Below, in pieces: positions 51,668-57,996 of a DNA stretch of 64,000 nucleotides. The translations under genes and the position numbers were made by a program. The DNA lies in the sequence record KY555145.1. The stretch is one strand, 5' to 3'. The notes below the pieces were generated by a model. The model had not been told where the DNA came from. It made no database searches and worked only from the letters and a program-made list of their open reading frames with translations. Positions within the stretch are counted from its first letter, which is position 1, and every line of letters begins with the position of its first letter.

Positions 51668-52444
51668 ATGGCCATCCAGAACCCCCATTCCACGACGCCG
51701 GGCGTGATGCCGCACCTGACTCCCGGAGAGGTCGGCGTCAACAAGGCCGACGACATTCTCTGGTTCCGCTCCCAGGGCCGGCGCGTGCCGATCATCCTGA
51801 GCGACCTCACCCGCGCCCCGCCGGCGGACGGCTATGTGGGCGCGCCCCTGGCCCTGGAGGGCGGCGCGCCGGTCTGGAACGTCAAGCTCTTGCCGTCCTC
51901 GATTGTCGCCGGCGCGGTCAAGGTCGACCTGCCGCCCGCCGCCGGCCTGCACGCCATGCCCAGCGTCCTGCTCCAAGGCCTGGGAACCGACCGCGTCCTG
52001 GCGGCCAACGACCTGGACCTCACCCCCTTCTATGTCCGCTCCGACTCCATCACCCTGACCCATCTGGCCTTCAGCGTGCGCTCGGCGGGCGCGCCGGCCA
52101 TGCGCGTGGGGATCGTCGATAGCTTCGGCGTCGTCCAGGCCGACATCCTGGTCGCCGCGCCGGTCGTGGGGGCCAATGTCGTGGCGCTCTCGCCGGTCCT
52201 GACCCTCCAGCGCGGCGTCTACCGCACCATCCTGGCGACGACCGGAGCGGTGACCGTGGGGATCGCCACGGGCGCGCGCATGGAACAGGGCTGGGACATC
52301 ATCGCCGACGCCCCGTCGTTCATCCACGGCTACAGCGGCAGCAAGAACACCGCTGGCGGCATCGGGAGCCTGCCGGCGCTGACCCCGCGCCGCGACCCCG
52401 CGCCGGGCCAGGATCACGCCGTCCTCCTGCGCTGGACGGCGTGA
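51668..52444 (+). CDS. fibre-associated protein
   Basis: PGEVGVNKADDILWF motif, paralogous C-domain. Confidence 0.7.
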   Translation: MAIQNPHSTTPGVMPHLTPGEVGVNKADDILWFRSQGRRVPIILSDLTRAPPADGYVGAPLALEGGAPVWNVKLLPSSIVAGAVKVDLPPAAGLHAMPSVLLQGLGTDRVLAANDLDLTPFYVRSDSITLTHLAFSVRSAGAPAMRVGIVDSFGVVQADILVAAPVVGANVVALSPVLTLQRGVYRTILATTGAVTVGIATGARMEQGWDIIADAPSFIHGYSGSKNTAGGIGSLPALTPRRDPAPGQDHAVLLRWTA

Positions 52445-52453
52445 ATCTTGACA
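52439..52453 (+). promoter_or_regulatory. late promoter motif
   Basis: GCGTGAATCTTGACA, TTAACC downstream. Confidence 0.7.
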
Positions 52454-52506
52454 CTCGGTCGAAATACGGTTAACCTGCGCGCTCATCTGGAGTTTCGAGC
52501 GCCAAC

Positions 52507-52773
52507 ATGGCCGAGCTTGTCCGCATCTATCACCCCGAGACGAACGAGCCGTTCGACGTGATTCCGTCGACCGCCGAACGTCTGCGCCTGGGTCAAGGTC
52601 TGGACGGTCTGGTGTGGCTCTCGCAGCCCTTCTCCCGCGCCGCTGCCGAAGAGCCGGCGCCGGAAGCCCCCAAGGGGCGAGGTCGTAAGCGCGTCGCCGC
52701 GCCCGTCTCGGACGAAGCCGAAGACGATGGCTGGCGTGACGCGCCGACCGAGGACGCTTCCGAAGCCGCGTAA
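52507..52773 (+). CDS. hypothetical protein
   Basis: 88 aa. Confidence 0.7.
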   Translation: MAELVRIYHPETNEPFDVIPSTAERLRLGQGLDGLVWLSQPFSRAAAEEPAPEAPKGRGRKRVAAPVSDEAEDDGWRDAPTEDASEAA

Positions 52774-52817
52774 GGCGCTTCCCCGTCCACTCTGCTGAAA
52801 TTCGGTCTCAGTCCCAT

Positions 52818-52893
52818 GTCGGTCTAGCTCATGGGGTAGAGCGGCGGTCTCCAAAACCGCGCGTGGCAGGTTCGAGTCCTGCGACCGGCGCCA
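52818..52893 (+). tRNA. tRNA-Trp(CCA)
   Basis: Cloverleaf, loop CT-CCA-AA, CCA end. Confidence 0.9.
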
Positions 52894-52898
52894 TTTCC

Positions 52899-52973
52899 GC
52901 GTCCATCGTATATGGGTTATTGCTTCGCGTTGCCAACGCGACGAACCGGGTTCGAGTCCCGGTGGACGCTCCA
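52899..52973 (+). tRNA. tRNA-Gly(GCC)
   Basis: Loop TT-GCC-AA, CCA end. Confidence 0.9.
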
Positions 52974-52979
52974 ATTCAT

Positions 52980-53053
52980 GCGGGTATAGCTCAAAGGGAG
53001 AGCTACTGCCTTCCAAGCAGAAGATGCGGGTTCGAGCCCCGCTATCCGCTCCA
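52980..53053 (+). tRNA. tRNA-Gly(TCC)
   Basis: Loop CT-TCC-AA, CCA end. Confidence 0.9.
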
Positions 53054-53074
53054 AATTTTTCTTCCACGACAAGC

Positions 53075-53103
53075 TTGACAGCCGTCGAGTTTTGTGAGAG
53101 CCT
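53075..53103 (+). promoter_or_regulatory. sigma70-type promoter, tRNA operon 1
   Basis: AAATTTTT UP tract, TTGACA, TTGTGAGAGCCT. Confidence 0.65.
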
Positions 53104-53112
53104 TCAACCACT

Positions 53113-53175
53113 ATGACGCACCTCCTGACCCGTTACGAACGCGAGGCCACCGGCCTCGATACCACCACCGCCTAA
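53113..53175 (+). CDS. leader peptide 1 (20 aa)
   Basis: MTHLLTRYEREATGLDTTTA overlapping the terminator hairpin. Confidence 0.6.
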   Translation: MTHLLTRYEREATGLDTTTA

Positions 53176-53202
53176 AAGCGGTTCTGGTAACCGAGGCCTT
53201 TT
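53152..53202 (+). terminator. attenuator terminator 1
   Basis: GGCCTCG/CGAGGCC outer stem, ACCA/TGGT and ACCGC/GCGGT inner stems, TTTT. Confidence 0.6.
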
Positions 53203-53209
53203 GTCATGT

Positions 53210-53287
53210 GGCCCGGTCGTCTAGCGGTTTGCAGGATTCGTGACTTTCAATCACGAGAGCGGAGTTCGAGTCTCCGTCGGGCCTCCA
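53210..53287 (+). tRNA. tRNA-Glu(TTC)
   Basis: Loop CT-TTC-AA, CCA end. Confidence 0.9.
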
Positions 53288-53308
53288 CCCAAAGTCTCCT
53301 CTGAGCTT

Positions 53309-53383
53309 GGTGCGTTCGTATATCGGTCAATACTCCGGATTGTCGATCCGGCAAGAGGGGTTCGATTCCCCTACGCACCGCCA
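53309..53383 (+). tRNA. tRNA-Asp(GTC)
   Basis: Loop TT-GTC-GA, CCA end. Confidence 0.9.
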
Positions 53384-53395
53384 GGGCTCCTCCCT

Positions 53396-53554
53396 ATGCC
53401 TCTTCAGTCGGGTTCGAGCGACGCCGTCGTCTCGCACAACATCGCCAAGCTGATCGACGAAGGCTACTCCAAGGAGCAGGCCGTGGCGATCGCCCTGTCC
53501 CAGGCGCGCAAGCCGCGCCGTCCGAAGGTCTCGCGCGGCTCACGCCGGCGCTGA
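53396..53554 (+). CDS. small basic protein (52 aa)
   Basis: [31 protein letters not shown], recalled phage family. Confidence 0.7.
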
Positions 53555-53623
53555 CCTCGCCTCGCTAAAGCACCCCAGTTCCCGGCCTCGTCGTGAGGCC
53601 GCCTGCGGTCGCGCGAGGCTTCC

Positions 53624-53848
53624 ATGACCTTTCTTGATCTTCGTTCGCAGTCGAGCGCCGCGCTCCTGCGCCATGTGTCTTCCCGATCCCCGATGGCGGA
53701 AGCGGCTCGCACCGAGTTGCTGACCCGAGGCCTCGTCCCGCTCCTCACGCGGCACAACGGCTGGCGCCTCGCCCCGAGCGAGCCCTTTCCGCAGCATCTC
53801 ATCCCGCGCCCCGATCCGCTCGCGAGGTTCACGTGGCGGGCGGGATGA
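53624..53848 (+). CDS. hypothetical protein
   Basis: GAGG RBS, 74 aa. Confidence 0.55.
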   Translation: MTFLDLRSQSSAALLRHVSSRSPMAEAARTELLTRGLVPLLTRHNGWRLAPSEPFPQHLIPRPDPLARFTWRAG

Positions 53849-53868
53849 AGATTTTTCTCACGACATGC

Positions 53869-53897
53869 TTGACATCCGTCTGAAGTTGTGAGAGCCT
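53869..53897 (+). promoter_or_regulatory. sigma70-type promoter, tRNA operon 2
   Basis: TTGACA ... TTGTGAGAGCCT, same design as 53075. Confidence 0.65.
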
Positions 53898-53991
53898 GTC
53901 CAACGTCACGGGTCACGACACTCCTCGTAGTGCAAAAGCGCGATCCTTCGTTATTCCCAGGCCGCCAGCGGGCGGCCGTTCGAGAGTCATC

Positions 53992-54138
53992 ATGTTCGCC
54001 TTGTCGCATAACAGCCTGAGCCTGAAAGCCGCCTCTCCGGCGACGCTTTCGCTTGCGCTGTCTCCGACGGCCGCGACGGCCGCGACGCCCTCGACCAAGC
54101 CGACCCACTCGGCCTCGCACTCGACGGATCACCTCTAG
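53992..54138 (+). CDS. leader peptide 2 (48 aa)
   Basis: MFALSHNSLSLKAASPATLSLALSPTAATAATPSTKPTHSASHSTDHL. Confidence 0.65.
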   Translation: MFALSHNSLSLKAASPATLSLALSPTAATAATPSTKPTHSASHSTDHL

Positions 54139-54203
54139 GGTATCTCGTCTCAGGTGCAGGCCTTGGAGCCGCACCCGCTACCAACATCCTGTTGACCTAG
54201 CGC

Positions 54204-54240
54204 AAGGCGGCTCCCAGCAAGGAGACCGCCTTTTCTTTTT
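54204..54240 (+). terminator. attenuator terminator 2
   Basis: AAGGCGGCTCC/GGAGACCGCCTT then TTCTTTTT. Confidence 0.8.
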
Positions 54241-54252
54241 CGCGTTGATCAT

Positions 54253-54328
54253 CGGGGTGTAGCTCAGTCGGTAGAGCGCTCGGTTCGGGACCGAGAGGCC
54301 GTGGGTTCGAGTCCCGCCACCCAGACCA
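54253..54328 (+). tRNA. tRNA-Pro(CGG)
   Basis: Loop TT-CGG-GA, CCA end. Confidence 0.9.
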
Positions 54329-54335
54329 ACGCCAT

Positions 54336-54410
54336 CGGGATGTAGCTCAGCGGTAGAGCGCGCGGCTGGGGGCCGCGAGGCCGCAGGTTCGAGACCTGCC
54401 ACCCCGACCA
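54336..54410 (+). tRNA. tRNA-Pro(GGG)
   Basis: Loop CT-GGG-GG, CCA end. Confidence 0.88.
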
Positions 54411-54415
54411 ACAAC

Positions 54416-54488
54416 GCTGCTGCGCCTGGATCGGCGCCGGCCCCTTGGTATGGGGAAGTAGAAGGTTCAATTCCTTCCAGCAGCACCA
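54416..54488 (+). tRNA. atypical tRNA-Thr(GGT)
   Basis: Perfect 7-bp acceptor G1-C72/C2-G71, loop TT-GGT-AT, aberrant D-arm. Confidence 0.6.
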
Positions 54489-54493
54489 ACAAC

Positions 54494-54563
54494 GCCGATG
54501 CCTCTAGGAGGACACGTCTTTCGTAATGACGTCAGGTGGGTGCGATCCCCACTTTCGGCTCCA
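54494..54563 (+). tRNA. atypical tRNA-Thr(CGT)
   Basis: GCC/GGC acceptor, ACGTC/GACGT stem, TT-CGT-AA closed by a T.T pair, small D-arm, CCA end. Confidence 0.55.
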
Positions 54564-54600
54564 TCAAGAGATGATCAAGGAGAGATCAGACGAAACAAAT

Positions 54601-54687
54601 GGATGTGTCACCTCAGTGGCGAGAGGACCGGGCTCTTAATCCGGCAGCGAAAGCTCATCGTGGGTTCGAGTCCCACCACATCCTCCA
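54601..54687 (+). tRNA. tRNA-Lys(CTT) with long variable arm
   Basis: Loop CT-CTT-AA; variable arm AGC-GAAA-GCT. Confidence 0.8.
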
Positions 54688-54692
54688 ATAAT

Positions 54693-54783
54693 GCACGAGT
54701 GACCCGAGTGGCGAAGGGCGTCGACTTTTAATAGACTAGGCGTCCGCGCCTCACCGAGGGTTCGAGTCCCTCCTCGTGCTCCA
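54693..54783 (+). tRNA. tRNA-Lys(TTT) with long variable arm
   Basis: Loop CT-TTT-AA; variable arm AGGCG-TCCG-CGCCT. Confidence 0.8.
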
Positions 54784-54789
54784 GGTTGT

Positions 54790-54873
54790 GCGAAAGTGGC
54801 GGAACGGCAGACGCACTGGTCTCAGGTACCAGCGACTTCGGTCATGAGGGTTCGAATCCCTCCTTTCGTACCA
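54790..54873 (+). tRNA. tRNA-Leu(CAG)
   Basis: Class II cloverleaf, CCA end. Confidence 0.9.
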
Positions 54874-54880
54874 ACGACAT

Positions 54881-54965
54881 GCCGGTCTGGCGGAAATGGC
54901 AGACGCAGTGGCTTCAAGTCCCACCGCCTTCGGGCGTCCCGGTTCGAGGCCGGGGACCGGCACCA
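54881..54965 (+). tRNA. tRNA-Leu(CAA)
   Basis: Class II cloverleaf, CCA end. Confidence 0.88.
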
Positions 54966-54970
54966 TTTGA

Positions 54971-55059
54971 TGCGAAGTGGCGGAACTTTGGTAGACGCAC
55001 CGGCATGAGAGGCCGGCGCCCTTCGGGGCGTGAGGGTTCGAGTCCCTTCTTCGCGACCA
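54971..55059 (+). tRNA. tRNA-Leu(GAG)
   Basis: Class II cloverleaf, loop AT-GAG-AG. Confidence 0.88.
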
Positions 55060-55066
55060 ATATAAT

Positions 55067-55138
55067 GCCGGACGGCGCAGGCGCGCGGGGGAGGTTGTGT
55101 CCCTCCTTGGCTCCGATCGTTACGGAGGTTCGGTTCCA
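55067..55138 (+). tRNA. atypical tRNA-His(GTG)
   Basis: GGAGG/CCTCC stem, loop TT-GTG-TC; non-canonical T-loop ATCGTTA. Confidence 0.55.
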
Positions 55139-55142
55139 TTAC

Positions 55143-55213
55143 GGGGTATGCGCAGGGCGCAGGCATCCTTTGCAAGGAAGTCGGGGTGGGTTCGAGTCCC
55201 ACATACTCCACCA
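55143..55213 (+). tRNA. tRNA-Ala(TGC)
   Basis: G3:U70 identity pair, loop TT-TGC-AA. Confidence 0.82.
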
Positions 55214-55217
55214 ACAT

Positions 55218-55305
55218 GGTAGGTTGGCTGAGAGGCCGAAGGCGCCCGTTTCGAAAACGGGAGGACCGCAAGGTTCCGTGGGTTCGAATCCCACACCTAC
55301 CTCCA
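55218..55305 (+). tRNA. tRNA-Ser(CGA)
   Basis: Class II cloverleaf. Confidence 0.9.
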
Positions 55306-55309
55306 ACAT

Positions 55310-55397
55310 GGATGTATGGCTGAGAGGCCGAAGGCGCCCGCTTGGAAAGCGGGTGAACCGCAAGGTTCCGTAGGTTCGAATCCTACTGCATCCGCCA
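55310..55397 (+). tRNA. tRNA-Ser(GGA)
   Basis: Class II cloverleaf. Confidence 0.9.
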
Positions 55398-55401
55398 ATA
55401 T

Positions 55402-55488
55402 GGTAGGTGGTTCCGGCCTGGGGCCGGACCCGGTTGCTAACCGGCCGGAGCCGCAAGGCTTGGGGTTCGATTCCTCCTCCTACCGCCA
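55402..55488 (+). tRNA. tRNA-Ser(GCT)
   Basis: Class II cloverleaf. Confidence 0.85.
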
Positions 55489-55531
55489 CTTCGATGTTGA
55501 CACCCGCAACGCGGCCTGTCATACGTCACGA

Positions 55532-55745
55532 CAGAGCGAACACCCCCCGGCCGGGTTTGTTGTCATACCGGGTCGTCACGCCCCGTCGGGGCTCTAGTAG
55601 CTCTTCGTGTGGAGTTTTCCGCCTCCCTCCCAGACAAGGAGGCGGACCCAACCAACATCGCGATCTCCCGTGATCGTCGGCGACGGGCGCCGTCAGAGAC
55701 CTTTGCCTGCGCGGCTTCGCTGCGGCCCTGGTCTCGTCCCGACCA
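55532..55745 (+). ncRNA. candidate structured small RNA
   Basis: Own promoter (TTGACA 55497, CATACG 55520); several hairpins; no convincing ORF. Confidence 0.4.
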
Positions 55746-55764
55746 AATTTTTTCGTCGTGGTGC

Positions 55765-55793
55765 TTGACACTGCGAAACTGTTCTGCTAGGGT
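55765..55793 (+). promoter_or_regulatory. sigma70-type promoter, tRNA operon 3
   Basis: AAATTTTTT, TTGACA, GCTAGGGT. Confidence 0.7.
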
Positions 55794-55800
55794 TCACGTC

Positions 55801-55899
55801 ATGAGCAAGACCTATCGTCAATTTGTGCGCCAGATTCAGGTCGTCCGGAATATCCGGGCGGGCCGCTCGCGCATGGCTGACGAAGGGTTCCGGGACTAG
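55801..55899 (+). CDS. leader peptide 3 (32 aa)
   Basis: MSKTYRQFVRQIQVVRNIRAGRSRMADEGFRD, nearly leaderless ATG. Confidence 0.7.
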   Translation: MSKTYRQFVRQIQVVRNIRAGRSRMADEGFRD

Positions 55900-55928
55900 G
55901 TCCCACTCCACGTTCAACCAGTTTCGCG

Positions 55929-55960
55929 AAGGCCCGCCTGGACACCCAGGCGGGCCTTTT
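55929..55960 (+). terminator. attenuator terminator 3
   Basis: AAGGCCCGCCTGG/CCAGGCGGGCCTT then TT. Confidence 0.85.
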
Positions 55961-56001
55961 CGCATTTCAGCTTCAGATCACGGAGATCGCCAAACAGACA
56001 C

Positions 56002-56086
56002 GGATGCTTAAAGCTGGAGGGCTCCAGCCGGGGACTGTAAATCCCCTCTCTTCGGAGGAGTGGTTCGATCCCACAAGCATCCACCA
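56002..56086 (+). tRNA. tRNA-Tyr(GTA)
   Basis: Loop CT-GTA-AA, long variable arm. Confidence 0.85.
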
Positions 56087-56091
56087 ACCAC

Positions 56092-56167
56092 GGACTCGTA
56101 GCTCAGCAGGTAGAGCGCCGGCTTGAAACCCCGGAGGTCGGAGGTTCGACTCCTCCCGTTTCCACCA
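56092..56167 (+). tRNA. tRNA-Phe(GAA)
   Basis: Cloverleaf, two acceptor mismatches. Confidence 0.85.
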
Positions 56168-56172
56168 ACAAC

Positions 56173-56248
56173 GCCCGATGAGCCAGATGGGAAGGCGCCG
56201 CCGCGACATGGCGGGATTGAGAAGGTTCGATTCCTTCATCAGGCACCA
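56173..56248 (+). tRNA. tRNA-Val(GAC)
   Basis: Loop GC-GAC-AT. Confidence 0.85.
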
Positions 56249-56250
56249 AT

Positions 56251-56326
56251 GCAAGTGTAGCTCAGTTGGTAGAGCAGCGGACCGATAATCCGCCCGTCCC
56301 TGGTTCGAGTCCAGGCATTTGCACCA
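56251..56326 (+). tRNA. tRNA-Ile(GAT)
   Basis: Loop CC-GAT-AA. Confidence 0.88.
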
Positions 56327-56333
56327 ATTCTGA

Positions 56334-56408
56334 TGTGGCATAGCTCAGGGGTAGAGCGCGCGCTTGATAAGCGTGAGGACGGGGGTTCGAAGCCCTCTGC
56401 CACTACCA
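56334..56408 (+). tRNA. tRNA-Ile(GAT)
   Basis: Loop TT-GAT-AA. Confidence 0.88.
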
Positions 56409-56441
56409 GTTTCCAGGCCGGCGGAGATGCGCCGGACCTGA

Positions 56442-56517
56442 TGGCGTTTAGCATAGTGGGAGTGCAGGGGTGTCACATACCTCGATCGAACTGGTTCGAT
56501 TCCAGTAACGCCAACCA
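56442..56517 (+). tRNA. tRNA-Val(CAC)
   Basis: Loop GT-CAC-AT. Confidence 0.85.
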
Positions 56518-56522
56518 ATCGT

Positions 56523-56596
56523 TGAGGGTTCGTCTAACGGTAGGACGGCTGGGTCTGGTCCAGCTAATCTAGGTTCGAGTCCTAGCCCCTCATCCA
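56523..56596 (+). tRNA. tRNA-Gln(CTG)
   Basis: Loop GT-CTG-GT. Confidence 0.87.
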
Positions 56597-56604
56597 AATA
56601 CTGT

Positions 56605-56680
56605 TCAGGGTTAGTTTAGCTGGTAAAACACTGGGTTTTGGCCCCGGCGTCGCTAGGTTCGAAGCCTGCACCCTGATCCA
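56605..56680 (+). tRNA. tRNA-Gln(TTG)
   Basis: Loop TT-TTG-GC. Confidence 0.85.
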
Positions 56681-56691
56681 TTTGAGTTTAT

Positions 56692-56766
56692 TCCAGTCAA
56701 TGCACAAGGTGTGCAGCGGCACTGTTAATGCCTGTGAGCCCGGTTCGATTCCGGGGTCTGGAGCCA
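56692..56766 (+). tRNA. tRNA-Asn(GTT)
   Basis: Loop CT-GTT-AA. Confidence 0.87.
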
Positions 56767-56792
56767 ACACGCCGGCCGAGGCCGGCACAAGC

Positions 56793-56875
56793 GCCCTGGT
56801 AACCGAGGGGGACTACGAATCCCTTAGTCGTAGCAGGAGTTGAAAAGGGTGGTTCGAATCCACTCCAGGGTGCCA
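56793..56875 (+). tRNA. atypical tRNA-Arg(ACG)-like, D-arm-less
   Basis: 7-bp acceptor, GGGGA/TCCCT with loop CT-ACG-AA, canonical T-loop, CCA end. Confidence 0.5.
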
Positions 56876-56882
56876 AATTCAT

Positions 56883-56965
56883 AGCGCGCAGGCCGAGCAG
56901 GATCATCGTCAGGCGTCGCCCTCCGAAGGCGAAGAGGCCCGGTTCGAGTCCGGGGCGCGCTGCCA
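56883..56965 (+). tRNA. tRNA-Arg(CCG) with enlarged D-loop
   Basis: Loop CT-CCG-AA; 17-nt D-loop. Confidence 0.8.
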
Positions 56966-56968
56966 TTC

Positions 56969-57046
56969 GCGCAGGTAGCTCAACGGACCCAGAGCGACCG
57001 TCTTCTACACGGAGGGTTGGGGGTTCGAATCCCTCCCTGCGCGCCA
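56969..57046 (+). tRNA. tRNA-Arg(TCT)
   Basis: Loop CT-TCT-AC. Confidence 0.9.
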
Positions 57047-57327
57047 AGCTTGACGAGTGATGCCGAATCGCTCAGCCTCCCGATCGGCTCTCGATGGGCC
57101 TCCACAAACCCAGTTCCGGACGATCTTCGAACGCGGCCTGCCGTGGAGGGGTGCTGGAAGGGCCGGGGTTGTGGAAACCGTCGAGCATCTCCTACATCCG
57201 GATCGGGCCTCCTGGGGGCTCCTCCGGTCAACCAGGGCCTGACCCGACCCCGGAGATGCGCCGTCTACGATCACCCAGGACCGTCCTGGCGGTGGAAAGG
57301 GTCTGAAATTTTTCTGGCGCTGATGTG

Positions 57328-57460
57328 TTGACACTCCTCGGAGGTTCGTCTAAAACCAGCAGCGTCAGAGCGGCGTTGGACCACGAGGTCCGCCGCGAGC
57401 TTCTGCGTTGTCGTCAGGAACGGCCCGTCAGCAATCCCGCTGGCGGGTCGTTTCGTTTTG
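57328..57460 (+). ncRNA. candidate ~100-nt small RNA with promoter and AAUCCC-loop terminator
   Basis: TTGACA, 17 bp, TAAAAC; hairpin CCCGTCAGC-AATCCC-GCTGGCGGG then T-rich tail. Confidence 0.5.
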
Positions 57461-57494
57461 GGCGCAATGCGACGTTCAGTCCAACCATGGGTAG

Positions 57495-57511
57495 TGTCAT
57501 GAATCTTGACT
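57495..57511 (+). promoter_or_regulatory. late promoter motif
   Basis: TGTCATGAATCTTGACT. Confidence 0.65.
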
Positions 57512-57579
57512 TTCGGCACTTATTCCGGTAGCTTTCCCGACATCAGCAAACGCTCACAAGTCGGGGACCGAGAGCCGTC

Positions 57580-57996
57580 ATGTCGCAAGACCACAACGGC
57601 TCGTCCTCGGGCCAAGAACGCATCTACCAGAAACTGGATGAGCTTGGCTCCATGCACGCGCGCACCCGTGAAGATATTGCCCGCATCCAGGAGATGATGC
57701 GAGCGGTCGGTTCGTCGCAGGAGCGGATCGAAAAGCGCCAGGATCATTTCGAGCGCGAAATCTGGCGTGAGATGGAAGACCGCGCCGCGCGCACGAGCGC
57801 CCAACTCGACGAAATCAAGAGCCACACCAACCTGCGCATCGAGGAGATCGAGGCCAAGGTCGACACGATCCGCGAGGAACGGATCGCCGAGAAGGCCCAG
57901 TGGCGCGGCCCCGAGAAGGCCATCGCCGCCCTGGTCGCCGTCGCCGGGGCCATCGCCGCCTTCGCCACGATCCTCACTTTCCTGAAGGGACACTAA
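57580..57996 (+). CDS. coiled-coil protein with C-terminal TM helix (holin/XhlA-like candidate)
   Basis: Coiled coil plus AIAALVAVAGAIAAFATILTFL. Confidence 0.6.
   Translation: MSQDHNGSSSGQERIYQKLDELGSMHARTREDIARIQEMMRAVGSSQERIEKRQDHFEREIWREMEDRAARTSAQLDEIKSHTNLRIEEIEAKVDTIREERIAEKAQWRGPEKAIAALVAVAGAIAAFATILTFLKGH

Follow-up and report, generated by a model that had tools for sequence, protein, structure and literature searches.

A candidate leader-peptide attenuator written in the codons of seven amino acids ahead of a phage tRNA operon

Bacterial transfer RNA (tRNA) genes are thought to be regulated at their promoters (by growth rate and guanosine tetraphosphate, ppGpp), and the tRNA clusters of phages are usually seen as constitutive cargo. 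The tRNA region of Caulobacter phage Ccr29 raises the question of what the promoter-like and terminator-like sequences between its tRNA genes are for. The stretch analysed here (hereafter, the window) comprises 64 kb and is identical base for base, with matching coordinates, to record KY555145 of Ccr29, a phiCbK-like phage of the subfamily Dolichocephalovirinae. The tRNA region spans 52818-57046, entirely on the + strand, and is split into sub-clusters by short stretches that lack tRNAs and start with CTTGACA. This heptamer occurs 15 times in the window (3.6 copies expected), 13 times on the + strand, and one copy heads each tRNA module, those inside the tRNA region being the four at 52447, 53074, 53868 and 55764; in the phiCbK record, rho-independent terminators are annotated directly 5' of three tRNA blocks. 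Here we focus on the module at the last of these copies, Leader 3, which falls within the tRNA region and precedes 12 tRNA genes. We suggest that it is likely to be a ribosome-mediated (that is, leader-peptide) transcription attenuator that acts on a leaderless messenger RNA (mRNA) and gates the tRNA operon behind it, and that the phage probably makes more of these tRNAs when they are short.

A codon run confined to the amino acids of the downstream tRNAs

Leader 3 opens with a promoter-like sequence and a 32-codon open reading frame (ORF). Relatives of the module were found in five phage lineages and eight metagenomic contigs, giving 21 distinct sequences. TTGAC followed by A, C or G is located 36-37 nt 5' of the ATG in 21/21 genome-derived phages, with a spacer of unconserved sequence, and TTGAC followed by A or G also lies upstream of the leader in 8/8 metagenomic loci; a TAnnnN hexamer occupies the -10 position in most relatives, and the ATG follows 7 nt downstream in 21/21 genome-derived phages. 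The 7 nt between the -10 element and the ATG are pyrimidine-rich and there is no Shine-Dalgarno sequence; because the ATG also coincides with the expected transcription start, the ORF is predicted to be leaderless, with transcription starting at or next to the ATG. Caulobacter possesses 375 leaderless mRNAs, which are translated as efficiently as leadered ones (PMC4117421). Across relatives the ORF is 31-33 codons long, with its stop at codon 32-34 and with in-frame indels only, and frame 1 is the sole forward frame that is open in all 15 phage sequences analysed, the others carrying stops. A conserved reverse-strand ORF was considered and rejected, as no reverse frame is open throughout the relatives.

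Codons 5-19, which lie exactly where the initial annotation had placed its run of control codons, encode solely Tyr, Phe, Val, Ile, Gln, Asn and Arg (Y, F, V, I, Q, N and R; hereafter, the set), that is, the amino acids of the downstream tRNAs. Consistent with the annotation's proposal that these codons are read by downstream anticodons, tRNA genes for all seven amino acids are present, those with anticodons GTA, GTT and ACG by manual reading. The set accounts for 30.2% of the residues in gene-like ORFs of the window, and an uninterrupted run of at least 15 of its members in a 32-residue peptide has a chance probability of 2e-7; the run at 55813 is the longest of all six frames in the 64 kb (runner-up, 12). 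A further proposal, that many of these codons are rare and end in T or A, is borne out in part: 6 of the 15 end in A or T compared with 14.6% in genes (P = 0.015), and TTT, ATT and CGT each make up less than 10% of their codon family, but this is a modest enrichment that relatives do not maintain at each codon. The rare ATT at codon 12 is unpaired in the predicted RNA fold (P1, described below), yet invariant in the first 15 sequences.

Across the 21 sequences, 304 of 309 codons in the run columns belong to the set, and no run lacks any of the seven amino acids. Minority amino-acid states fall within the set in 23 of 28 cases, whereas random non-synonymous change would place 23-30% of them there (P about 1e-8); when the count is limited to codons 5-15, on which the inner hairpin (described below) places no constraint, it is 16 of 18 (P <= 3e-7). 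The replacements are chemically radical (TTT to AAC, GTC to CGC, and ATC to AAC, TAC or TTC; that is, F to N, V to R, and I to N, Y or F), and the three codon positions contribute about equally to the variable columns (8, 9 and 10 of 15 for positions 1, 2 and 3, respectively), a pattern that is unlike the evolution of a protein under sequence selection. We read this reshuffling within the set as the signature of selection that acts on which tRNA reads a codon, not on the peptide. Among relatives, the downstream tRNAs never depart from the seven amino acids of the set.

These patterns bear directly on a different explanation, in which the ORF encodes a functional small basic protein, the hairpin and T-run behind it serve as its terminator or as an insulator between tRNA units, and the tRNAs are transcribed through constitutive leakage. 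The ORF is indeed conserved, the S2L and RBC57 annotations list it as a hypothetical protein, and residues Y5, V9, G21 and S23 are among those invariant in a six-sequence protein alignment. Radical replacements at single positions and equal variability of the three codon positions are hard to reconcile with such a protein, however, and the invariant residues GRS are encoded where region 2 of the RNA helices lies (see below). Given also that neither Pfam nor PHROGs contains a family matching the Leader 3 peptide, and that a small protein would leave the complementarity and covariation of regions 2 and 3 without a role, we regard this explanation as very unlikely.

Mutually exclusive helices supported by compensatory changes

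The leader folds with z = -6.1 relative to shuffles, its minimum free energy (MFE) structure consisting of a long hairpin (P1) and a terminator. P1 comprises an outer helix that covers control codons and an inner hairpin between regions 1 and 2 (55841-49 with 55853-61; the anti-antiterminator), both of which had been missed in the initial annotation; the terminator (regions 3 and 4; 55931-55960) has an 11-bp G+C-rich stem, a 4-nt loop (ACAC) and a T-run, and is annotated as rho-independent in phiCbK. In an alignment of 15 sequences, 79.9% of the cells of the outer P1 helix are paired, with 3 covarying pairs. For the inner 1:2 hairpin the value is 90.7%, with 3 pairs changed on both sides (compensatory variants CCGG/CCGG, CCGA/TCGG and CCAG/CTGG), and for the terminator it is 99.4%, with 4 pairs changed on both sides.

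Region 2 has a second potential partner. As the initial annotation recognized, CCGGGCGGGCC (55854-55864) is complementary to the 5' arm of the terminator, GGCCCGCCTGG (55931-55941), through 10 Watson-Crick pairs and one G.U pair. This strand does not directly follow the control run, as had been supposed, but begins within it, at the last nucleotide of codon 18, and takes in codon 19. The predicted antiterminator helix is also longer than proposed: TCGCG (55867-55871) pairs with CGCGA (55925-55929) to give a helix of 11 + 5 bp, which explains an otherwise unexplained conserved CGAA/GCGAA block just 5' of the terminator. The match of 11 nucleotides was rejected as sufficient evidence on its own, with 13 copies (at most 1 mismatch) in the window against 14 expected and a chance of about 0.01 of finding a copy within 100 nt upstream; conservation and covariation are what give it weight. 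In the alignment, 98.2% of the cells of the 2:3 helix are paired and 3 pairs have changed on both sides, whereas controls in which the partner was slid by 1-3 columns yield 24-55% and 0-1 such pairs. The same columns of region 3 co-vary with both partners, that is, with regions 2 and 4: CcrSC and BL9 carry a G-to-A change in region 2, a C-to-U change in region 3 and a G-to-A change in region 4 together. In Bajun, regions 2 and 3 alone have changed and the terminator is left with a U.G pair, which specifically favours 2:3 pairing over the idea that region 2 simply duplicates region 4. Region 2 also binds its own region 3 better than foreign ones (-31.2 compared with -26.8 kcal/mol), a difference reached in 0 of 20,000 permutations (P <= 5e-5), although the shuffle and permutation P values are inflated because the sequences are related, the independent compensatory events numbering approximately 5-8.

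The two folds succeed one another as the predicted transcript grows. For Ccr29, P1 is the MFE structure of the nascent RNA up to nucleotide 134, the antiterminator takes its place at 137-150 (-60.7 kcal/mol, compared with -50.6 kcal/mol for P1 alone), and P1 plus terminator becomes the MFE structure with region 4 transcribed (-76.6 kcal/mol). When the transcript ends before region 4, the antiterminator is the MFE structure in 17/18 phage sequences, 6.6-16.6 kcal/mol better than P1 alone, and the full-length RNA of those 17/18 adopts P1 plus terminator (the exception being CcrSC, in which the antiterminator is already the full-length MFE structure). The same bistable folding is found in 7/8 metagenomic sequences, and the antiterminator folds before region 4 in 25/26 of all sequences folded (phage and metagenomic).

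One further helix, a small hairpin that presents the stop codon in its loop, recurs with a stem that differs by lineage (GGGAC/GUCCC, GAGGGU/GCCCUC, GUGGGC/GCCCAC and CAGAU/AUCUG); a role in pausing or synchronizing polymerase and ribosome is possible. With so stable a fold and so many conserved helices, including this covarying one, the module might be thought an untranslated structured RNA with a fortuitous frame, either a short regulatory RNA that ends at the terminator or an element for the processing or stability of the tRNA precursor. In alpha-proteobacteria, terminated attenuator RNAs can act in trans (rnTrpL; PMC6614838). Such an RNA, however, would not account for a fixed distance between ATG and promoter, indels that preserve the frame, a stop conserved at codon 32-34 and the closure of the other frames, nor for an amino-acid-class constraint that is seen only in the reading frame of the leader, and we give this explanation very little credence. 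A trans-acting role for the terminated 160-nt RNA or for the peptide could nonetheless exist alongside attenuation.

A proposed model in which scarcity of tRNA relieves attenuation

Assuming that Leader 3 is indeed a ribosome-mediated attenuator, its operation can be envisioned as follows. Host RNA polymerase would start at the TTGACA-type promoter, essentially at the ATG, and Caulobacter ribosomes would efficiently translate the resulting leaderless leader mRNA, the 5' half of the ORF (that is, the control run) doubling as the 5' strand of P1 and the 3' strand of P1 containing region 2. With ample aminoacyl-tRNAs, the ribosome would reach the stop codon; as the stop lies 33 nt past region 2, regions 1 and 2 would be free to re-pair, so that P1 (including the 1:2 hairpin) may re-form behind the ribosome, regions 3 and 4 pair and transcription ends at 55960. 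If any tRNA of the set were scarce, the ribosome would stall within the run and hold P1 open, region 2 and TCGCG would pair with the emerging region 3, no terminator would form and the polymerase would enter the tRNA genes. The accumulating phage tRNA would then relieve the stall, amounting to negative feedback on tRNA supply. The parts, their conservation, the match between codons and tRNAs and the mutually exclusive helices are seen in the sequences, whereas the scheme infers where transcription starts, that the ORF is translated, at which codons stalls are productive, which way the response runs and what triggers it physiologically.

A footprint model, in which the ribosome covers 10 nt beyond the A-site codon, indicates where stalls could be productive. 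Stalls at A-site codons <=14 leave region 2 wholly free, codons 11-15 directly cover region 1, and with stalls at codons 12-14 the antiterminator is appreciably occupied even when the full-length RNA is at equilibrium; stalls at approximately codons 11-15 are predicted to be the most effective. Stalls at codons 5-10 would open the outer helix only, thereby freeing 55866-71, the first segment with which the emerging region 3 can pair; pairing might nucleate at this segment and region 3 then displace region 1. The initial annotation had a ribosome stalled anywhere in the run liberating the antiterminator strand, which holds in this model for an A site up to approximately codon 14-15, but not for codons 16-19, at which the ribosome would cover that strand.

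Taken together, the classical attenuator geometry originally proposed is supported, with promoter, ORF, cognate codons, terminator and covarying antiterminator all conserved; as far as sequence can attest, every hallmark of a ribosome-mediated attenuator is present and maintained among the relatives. Besides the relatedness of the sequences noted above, several points weigh against this assignment. The -10-like TAGGGT is a poor match to TATAAT and is not called by a consensus scan. In the footprint model, stalls at codons 16-19 mask region 2 and should favour termination, an effect of opposite sign; these four codons are also weaker evidence for the run because they are constrained by the hairpin itself (CGG lies in its stems, and its A/U-rich loop tends to encode N, I, F and Y), and the only Asn codon of the Ccr29 run lies among them. 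Extra tRNA cannot relieve a stall that is caused by amino-acid shortage, and the physiological logic is thus assumed, not shown. One metagenomic sequence (L039, 805-971) has a degenerate region 2 (CCGGCGGCGC), no antiterminator fold and Pro at the last codon of the run; this copy may be decaying, or its pairing may be in another register, and its contig ends too soon to show tRNAs. Finally, as the tRNA set is invariant among relatives, the family offers no comparison of a leader with a changed set of tRNAs, a contrast that only Leader 2 provides.

Sister leaders and the specificity of the control codons

Leader 2 (53868-54240) consists of a CTTGACA promoter at 53868, a 48-codon ORF (53992-54138) and a terminator-like hairpin at ~54205-54240, and is followed by tRNAs for Pro, Pro, Thr, Lys, Lys, Leu (three), (His), Ala and Ser (three). 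Residues of {P,T,K,L,H,A,S} make up 44/48 of its peptide (P = 4e-12) when the His tRNA annotated there in BL10 and Bajun is counted and 40/48 (P = 9e-9) when His is left out, and two residues belong to the Leader 3 set. The leader is conserved in relatives, with 91-93% set content, and corresponds to phrog_12742 (unknown function). Being non-homologous to Leader 3 and matched to another tRNA set, Leader 2 is the nearest thing to a test of leader-tRNA covariation that the sequences provide.

This comparison helps to judge whether codon identity matters at all. The module could be a translation-dependent attenuator that senses general translational capacity (for example, ribosome availability or host shut-off), in which case the codons would be incidental and any ribosome that opens P1 would modulate termination. 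Such a codon-blind switch would use the same alternative helices, and the dependence of leaderless initiation on free 70S ribosomes (PMC4117421) would suit it. Confinement of the run to the seven amino acids of the downstream tRNAs in 21/21 sequences, despite reshuffling, and confinement of Leader 2 to a different set that matches its own tRNAs both argue against codon blindness, which we consider improbable.

Leader 1 (53074-53205) contains a promoter and a 20-codon ORF (MTHLLTRYEREATGLDTTTA, 53113-53175) that is identical in phiCbK, Rogue and BL10, and its codons 14-16 form the 5' arm of the terminator, GGCCTCG, with tRNA-Glu and tRNA-Asp following directly. Here the ribosome might act by direct occlusion; the Glu/Asp content of Leader 1 is not statistically distinctive and is not counted as support. 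On the basis of Leaders 3 and 2, we lean towards the view that phiCbK-like phages carry autonomous controllers of tRNA supply, each sub-operon being headed by its own attenuator written in cognate codons.

Distribution of the module

Leader 3 is present in every Dolichocephalovirinae lineage reached, that is, Shapirovirus, Poindextervirus, Bertelyvirus, Colossusvirus and the Brevundimonas phages (Gurke, Kikimora, Kabachok, Domovoi and Bajun). The eight metagenomic contigs, which were found by a peptide profile search, share the synteny deformylase ... leader-tRNAs ... PhoH, and the module retains its tRNA block even when protein genes take the place of tRNAs on its upstream side. Pattern scans of viral contigs returned the same phages and one chance match in a coding region without tRNAs, a strict pattern scan of metagenome contigs returned nothing, and a scan of genome contigs returned one chance match, in a Chloroflexota metagenome-assembled genome without tRNAs. 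In the more distant CbK-like phages RcXuper, DSS3P8 and XM05, no tRNA cluster lies beside phoH. The supplements of the phiCbK RNA-sequencing paper hold no entries that can be matched to the neighbouring genes.

Relation to known attenuators

The closest known systems are the ilvL/ilvGMEDA and ilvBN leaders of Enterobacteria and the ilvBN leader of Caulobacter, which, like Leader 3, carry multivalent control codons in a short peptide (the ilvL leader peptide has 32 amino acids), form alternative 1:2, 2:3 and 3:4 helices and end in an intrinsic terminator. Leader 3 differs from these in that it would regulate tRNA genes rather than biosynthetic enzymes, addresses seven amino-acid classes rather than two or three, is encoded by a phage on an mRNA predicted to be leaderless, and has no sequence or Rfam relationship to them. 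The leaders trpL, hisL, leuL, thrL and pheL share the architecture and the inferred logic (that is, region 2 is freed by a ribosome stalled on region 1 and then captures region 3), but each senses a single amino acid through tandem identical codons; moreover, in trp the ribosome at the stop codon covers region 2, whereas in Leader 3 the stop lies 33 nt beyond it and re-formation of the 1:2 hairpin would have to do that job. In terms of target, the nearest is pheM of Escherichia coli, which attenuates a component of the translation apparatus for the amino acid that it senses: the phenylalanyl-tRNA synthetase operon pheST is controlled by leader-peptide attenuation through that same amino acid. 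The pheM leader is cellular and controls a synthetase by one amino acid, whereas Leader 3 would control tRNA genes of a phage by seven. T-box riboswitches are functional analogues, in that a terminator/antiterminator switch reads the state of a specific tRNA on behalf of the same decoding pathway; unlike Leader 3, they bind uncharged tRNA directly and need neither ribosome nor ORF. The Caulobacter host has an ilvBN leader attenuator of its own (PMC4117421).

In Rfam, no leader family or T-box matches the window at gathering score, and a search at E <= 1 that covered 52400-57600 and seven related loci gave none either; over the element, the matches at both thresholds are tRNAs and noise only. 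Full-text searches of the literature, including one on Dolichocephalovirinae tRNAs, turned up no account of tRNA genes under attenuation, whether phage or bacterial; the coverage being incomplete, this is an absence of evidence only. What is new in Leader 3 is likely to be that an attenuator controls tRNA genes and reads seven amino acids, the mechanism being otherwise classical.

If this is correct, Leader 3 would be the first case of ribosome-mediated attenuation of tRNA genes and the most multivalent attenuator known. The phage would gauge decoding capacity in the infected cell codon class by codon class and top up only the missing tRNAs, with direct feedback from the decoding capacity for a codon class to the synthesis of the tRNAs of that class; the shortage could stem from, for example, late-gene demand, host shut-off or tRNA-cleaving defence systems. 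Such control would account for the division of these clusters into sub-operons that each have a promoter and a terminator 5' of the tRNAs, would give a purpose to the small 'hypothetical' ORFs that lie among the tRNA genes, and would explain why tRNAs are the only functional RNA elements in the phiCbK genome paper (PMC3556154), according to which Tyr tRNAs are absent. It would bear on why phages carry tRNAs (that is, for codon supply or to compensate for loss of host tRNAs), and would provide a compact, tractable sensor of tRNA availability in a model host.

Features of the module and its surroundings

Table 1 Predicted and annotated features of Leader 3 and adjoining sequence in Ccr29
Feature	Position	Strand	Remarks
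Terminator-like hairpin and T-run	55729..55753	+	Consensus scan; TGGTCTCGTCCCGACCA then AATTTTTT; ends preceding tRNA unit
-35 hexamer TTGACA	55765..55770	+	Sequence
-10-like hexamer TAGGGT	55788..55793	+	17 nt after -35, 7 nt before ATG
Leader ORF, 32 codons and TAG	55801..55899	+	ATG 55801-55803, stop TAG 55897-55899; peptide MSKTYRQFVRQIQVVRNIRAGRSRMADEGFRD
Outer P1 helix, 5' strand	55809..55833	+	Control codons 3-11; pairs with 55866-55889; MFE fold
Control-codon run, codons 5-19	55813..55857	+	YRQFVRQIQVVRNIR; predicted productive stall sites approximately codons 5-15
Region 1, 5' strand of inner 1:2 hairpin (anti-antiterminator)	55841..55849	+	MFE fold and covariation
Region 2	55853..55871	+	Pairs either with region 1 (through 55853-55861) or with region 3 (through 55854-55864)
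Outer P1 helix, 3' strand	55866..55889	+	Would hide proposed antiterminator nucleation site 55866-55871 when P1 is closed
Small hairpin with stop codon in loop (GGGAC-UAG-GUCCC)	55892..55904	+	Every lineage, with differing stem sequence
Region 3	55925..55941	+	Terminator 5' arm GGCCCGCCTGG (55931-41) and upstream CGCGA (55925-29)
Region 4	55946..55960	+	Terminator 3' arm CCAGGCGGGCC (55946-55956), then TTTT
12 tRNA genes (predicted to be regulated)	56002..57046	+	ARAGORN, Rfam and manual reading

The terminator-like hairpin at the 5' boundary closes the preceding tRNA unit, which makes the Leader 3 module a transcription unit of its own. At the other end, the consensus promoter scan, which also overlooks the weak promoter of the module itself, lists no promoter-like site in the 41 nt that separate the terminator from the first tRNA. 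The block behind it reads Tyr-GTA, Phe-GAA, Val-GAC, Ile-GAT (twice), Val-CAC, Gln-CTG, Gln-TTG, Asn-GTT, Arg-ACG, Arg-CCG and Arg-TCT, in total one tRNA each for Tyr, Phe and Asn, two each for Val, Ile and Gln, and three for Arg. Anticodons found by ARAGORN include GAA, GAC, GAT (twice), CAC, CTG, TTG, CCG and TCT. Four tRNAs were missed or miscalled by it in Ccr29, namely Tyr-GTA (56002-56087), Asn-GTT (56692-56766, miscalled Ile-aat), Arg-ACG (~56793-56875) and Arg-CCG (56883-56965); these have long variable or D arms and their anticodon loops were read manually, and their homologues in related phages are called by ARAGORN. The published description of phiCbK gives Tyr and Thr tRNAs as absent in all six phages and Asn as absent in all except Colossus.

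Other atypical tRNA genes in the region are likewise poorly handled by standard tools: two Lys tRNAs (54601-54783) of 87-91 nt with long variable arms are missed or miscalled, as are, in similar fashion, Ser-GCT (55402-55488) and a possibly degenerate His-GTG (55067-55140). Between a promoter-like TTGACA at 55498 and the terminator-like hairpin at 55729-55753 lie ~230 nt without a convincing ORF or tRNA, with a fold z-score of just -2.0; Karma and Swift have an insertion with a hypothetical gene there. Between the terminator of Leader 3 and tRNA-Tyr, a GATC...GGAGATCGCC block is conserved (55975-55992 in Ccr29, and at the same place in L003, L009, L012 and L021). GGAGATCGCC is strongly Shine-Dalgarno-like, and in most relatives a 5-codon mini-ORF (MNNGG* or MTGGD*) comes next, Ccr29 being without the ATG. 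Directly after tRNA-Gly in CcrRogue and CcrBL10, Rfam places a skipping-rope RNA (RF02924) above gathering score (L003 1394-1490 and L006 1452-1548, respectively). A GOLLD-like match of 120 bits, below the gathering score of 150, is found in CcrSC and a partial one in phage C1 (L004 204-619 and L010 1-244, respectively, both on the - strand).

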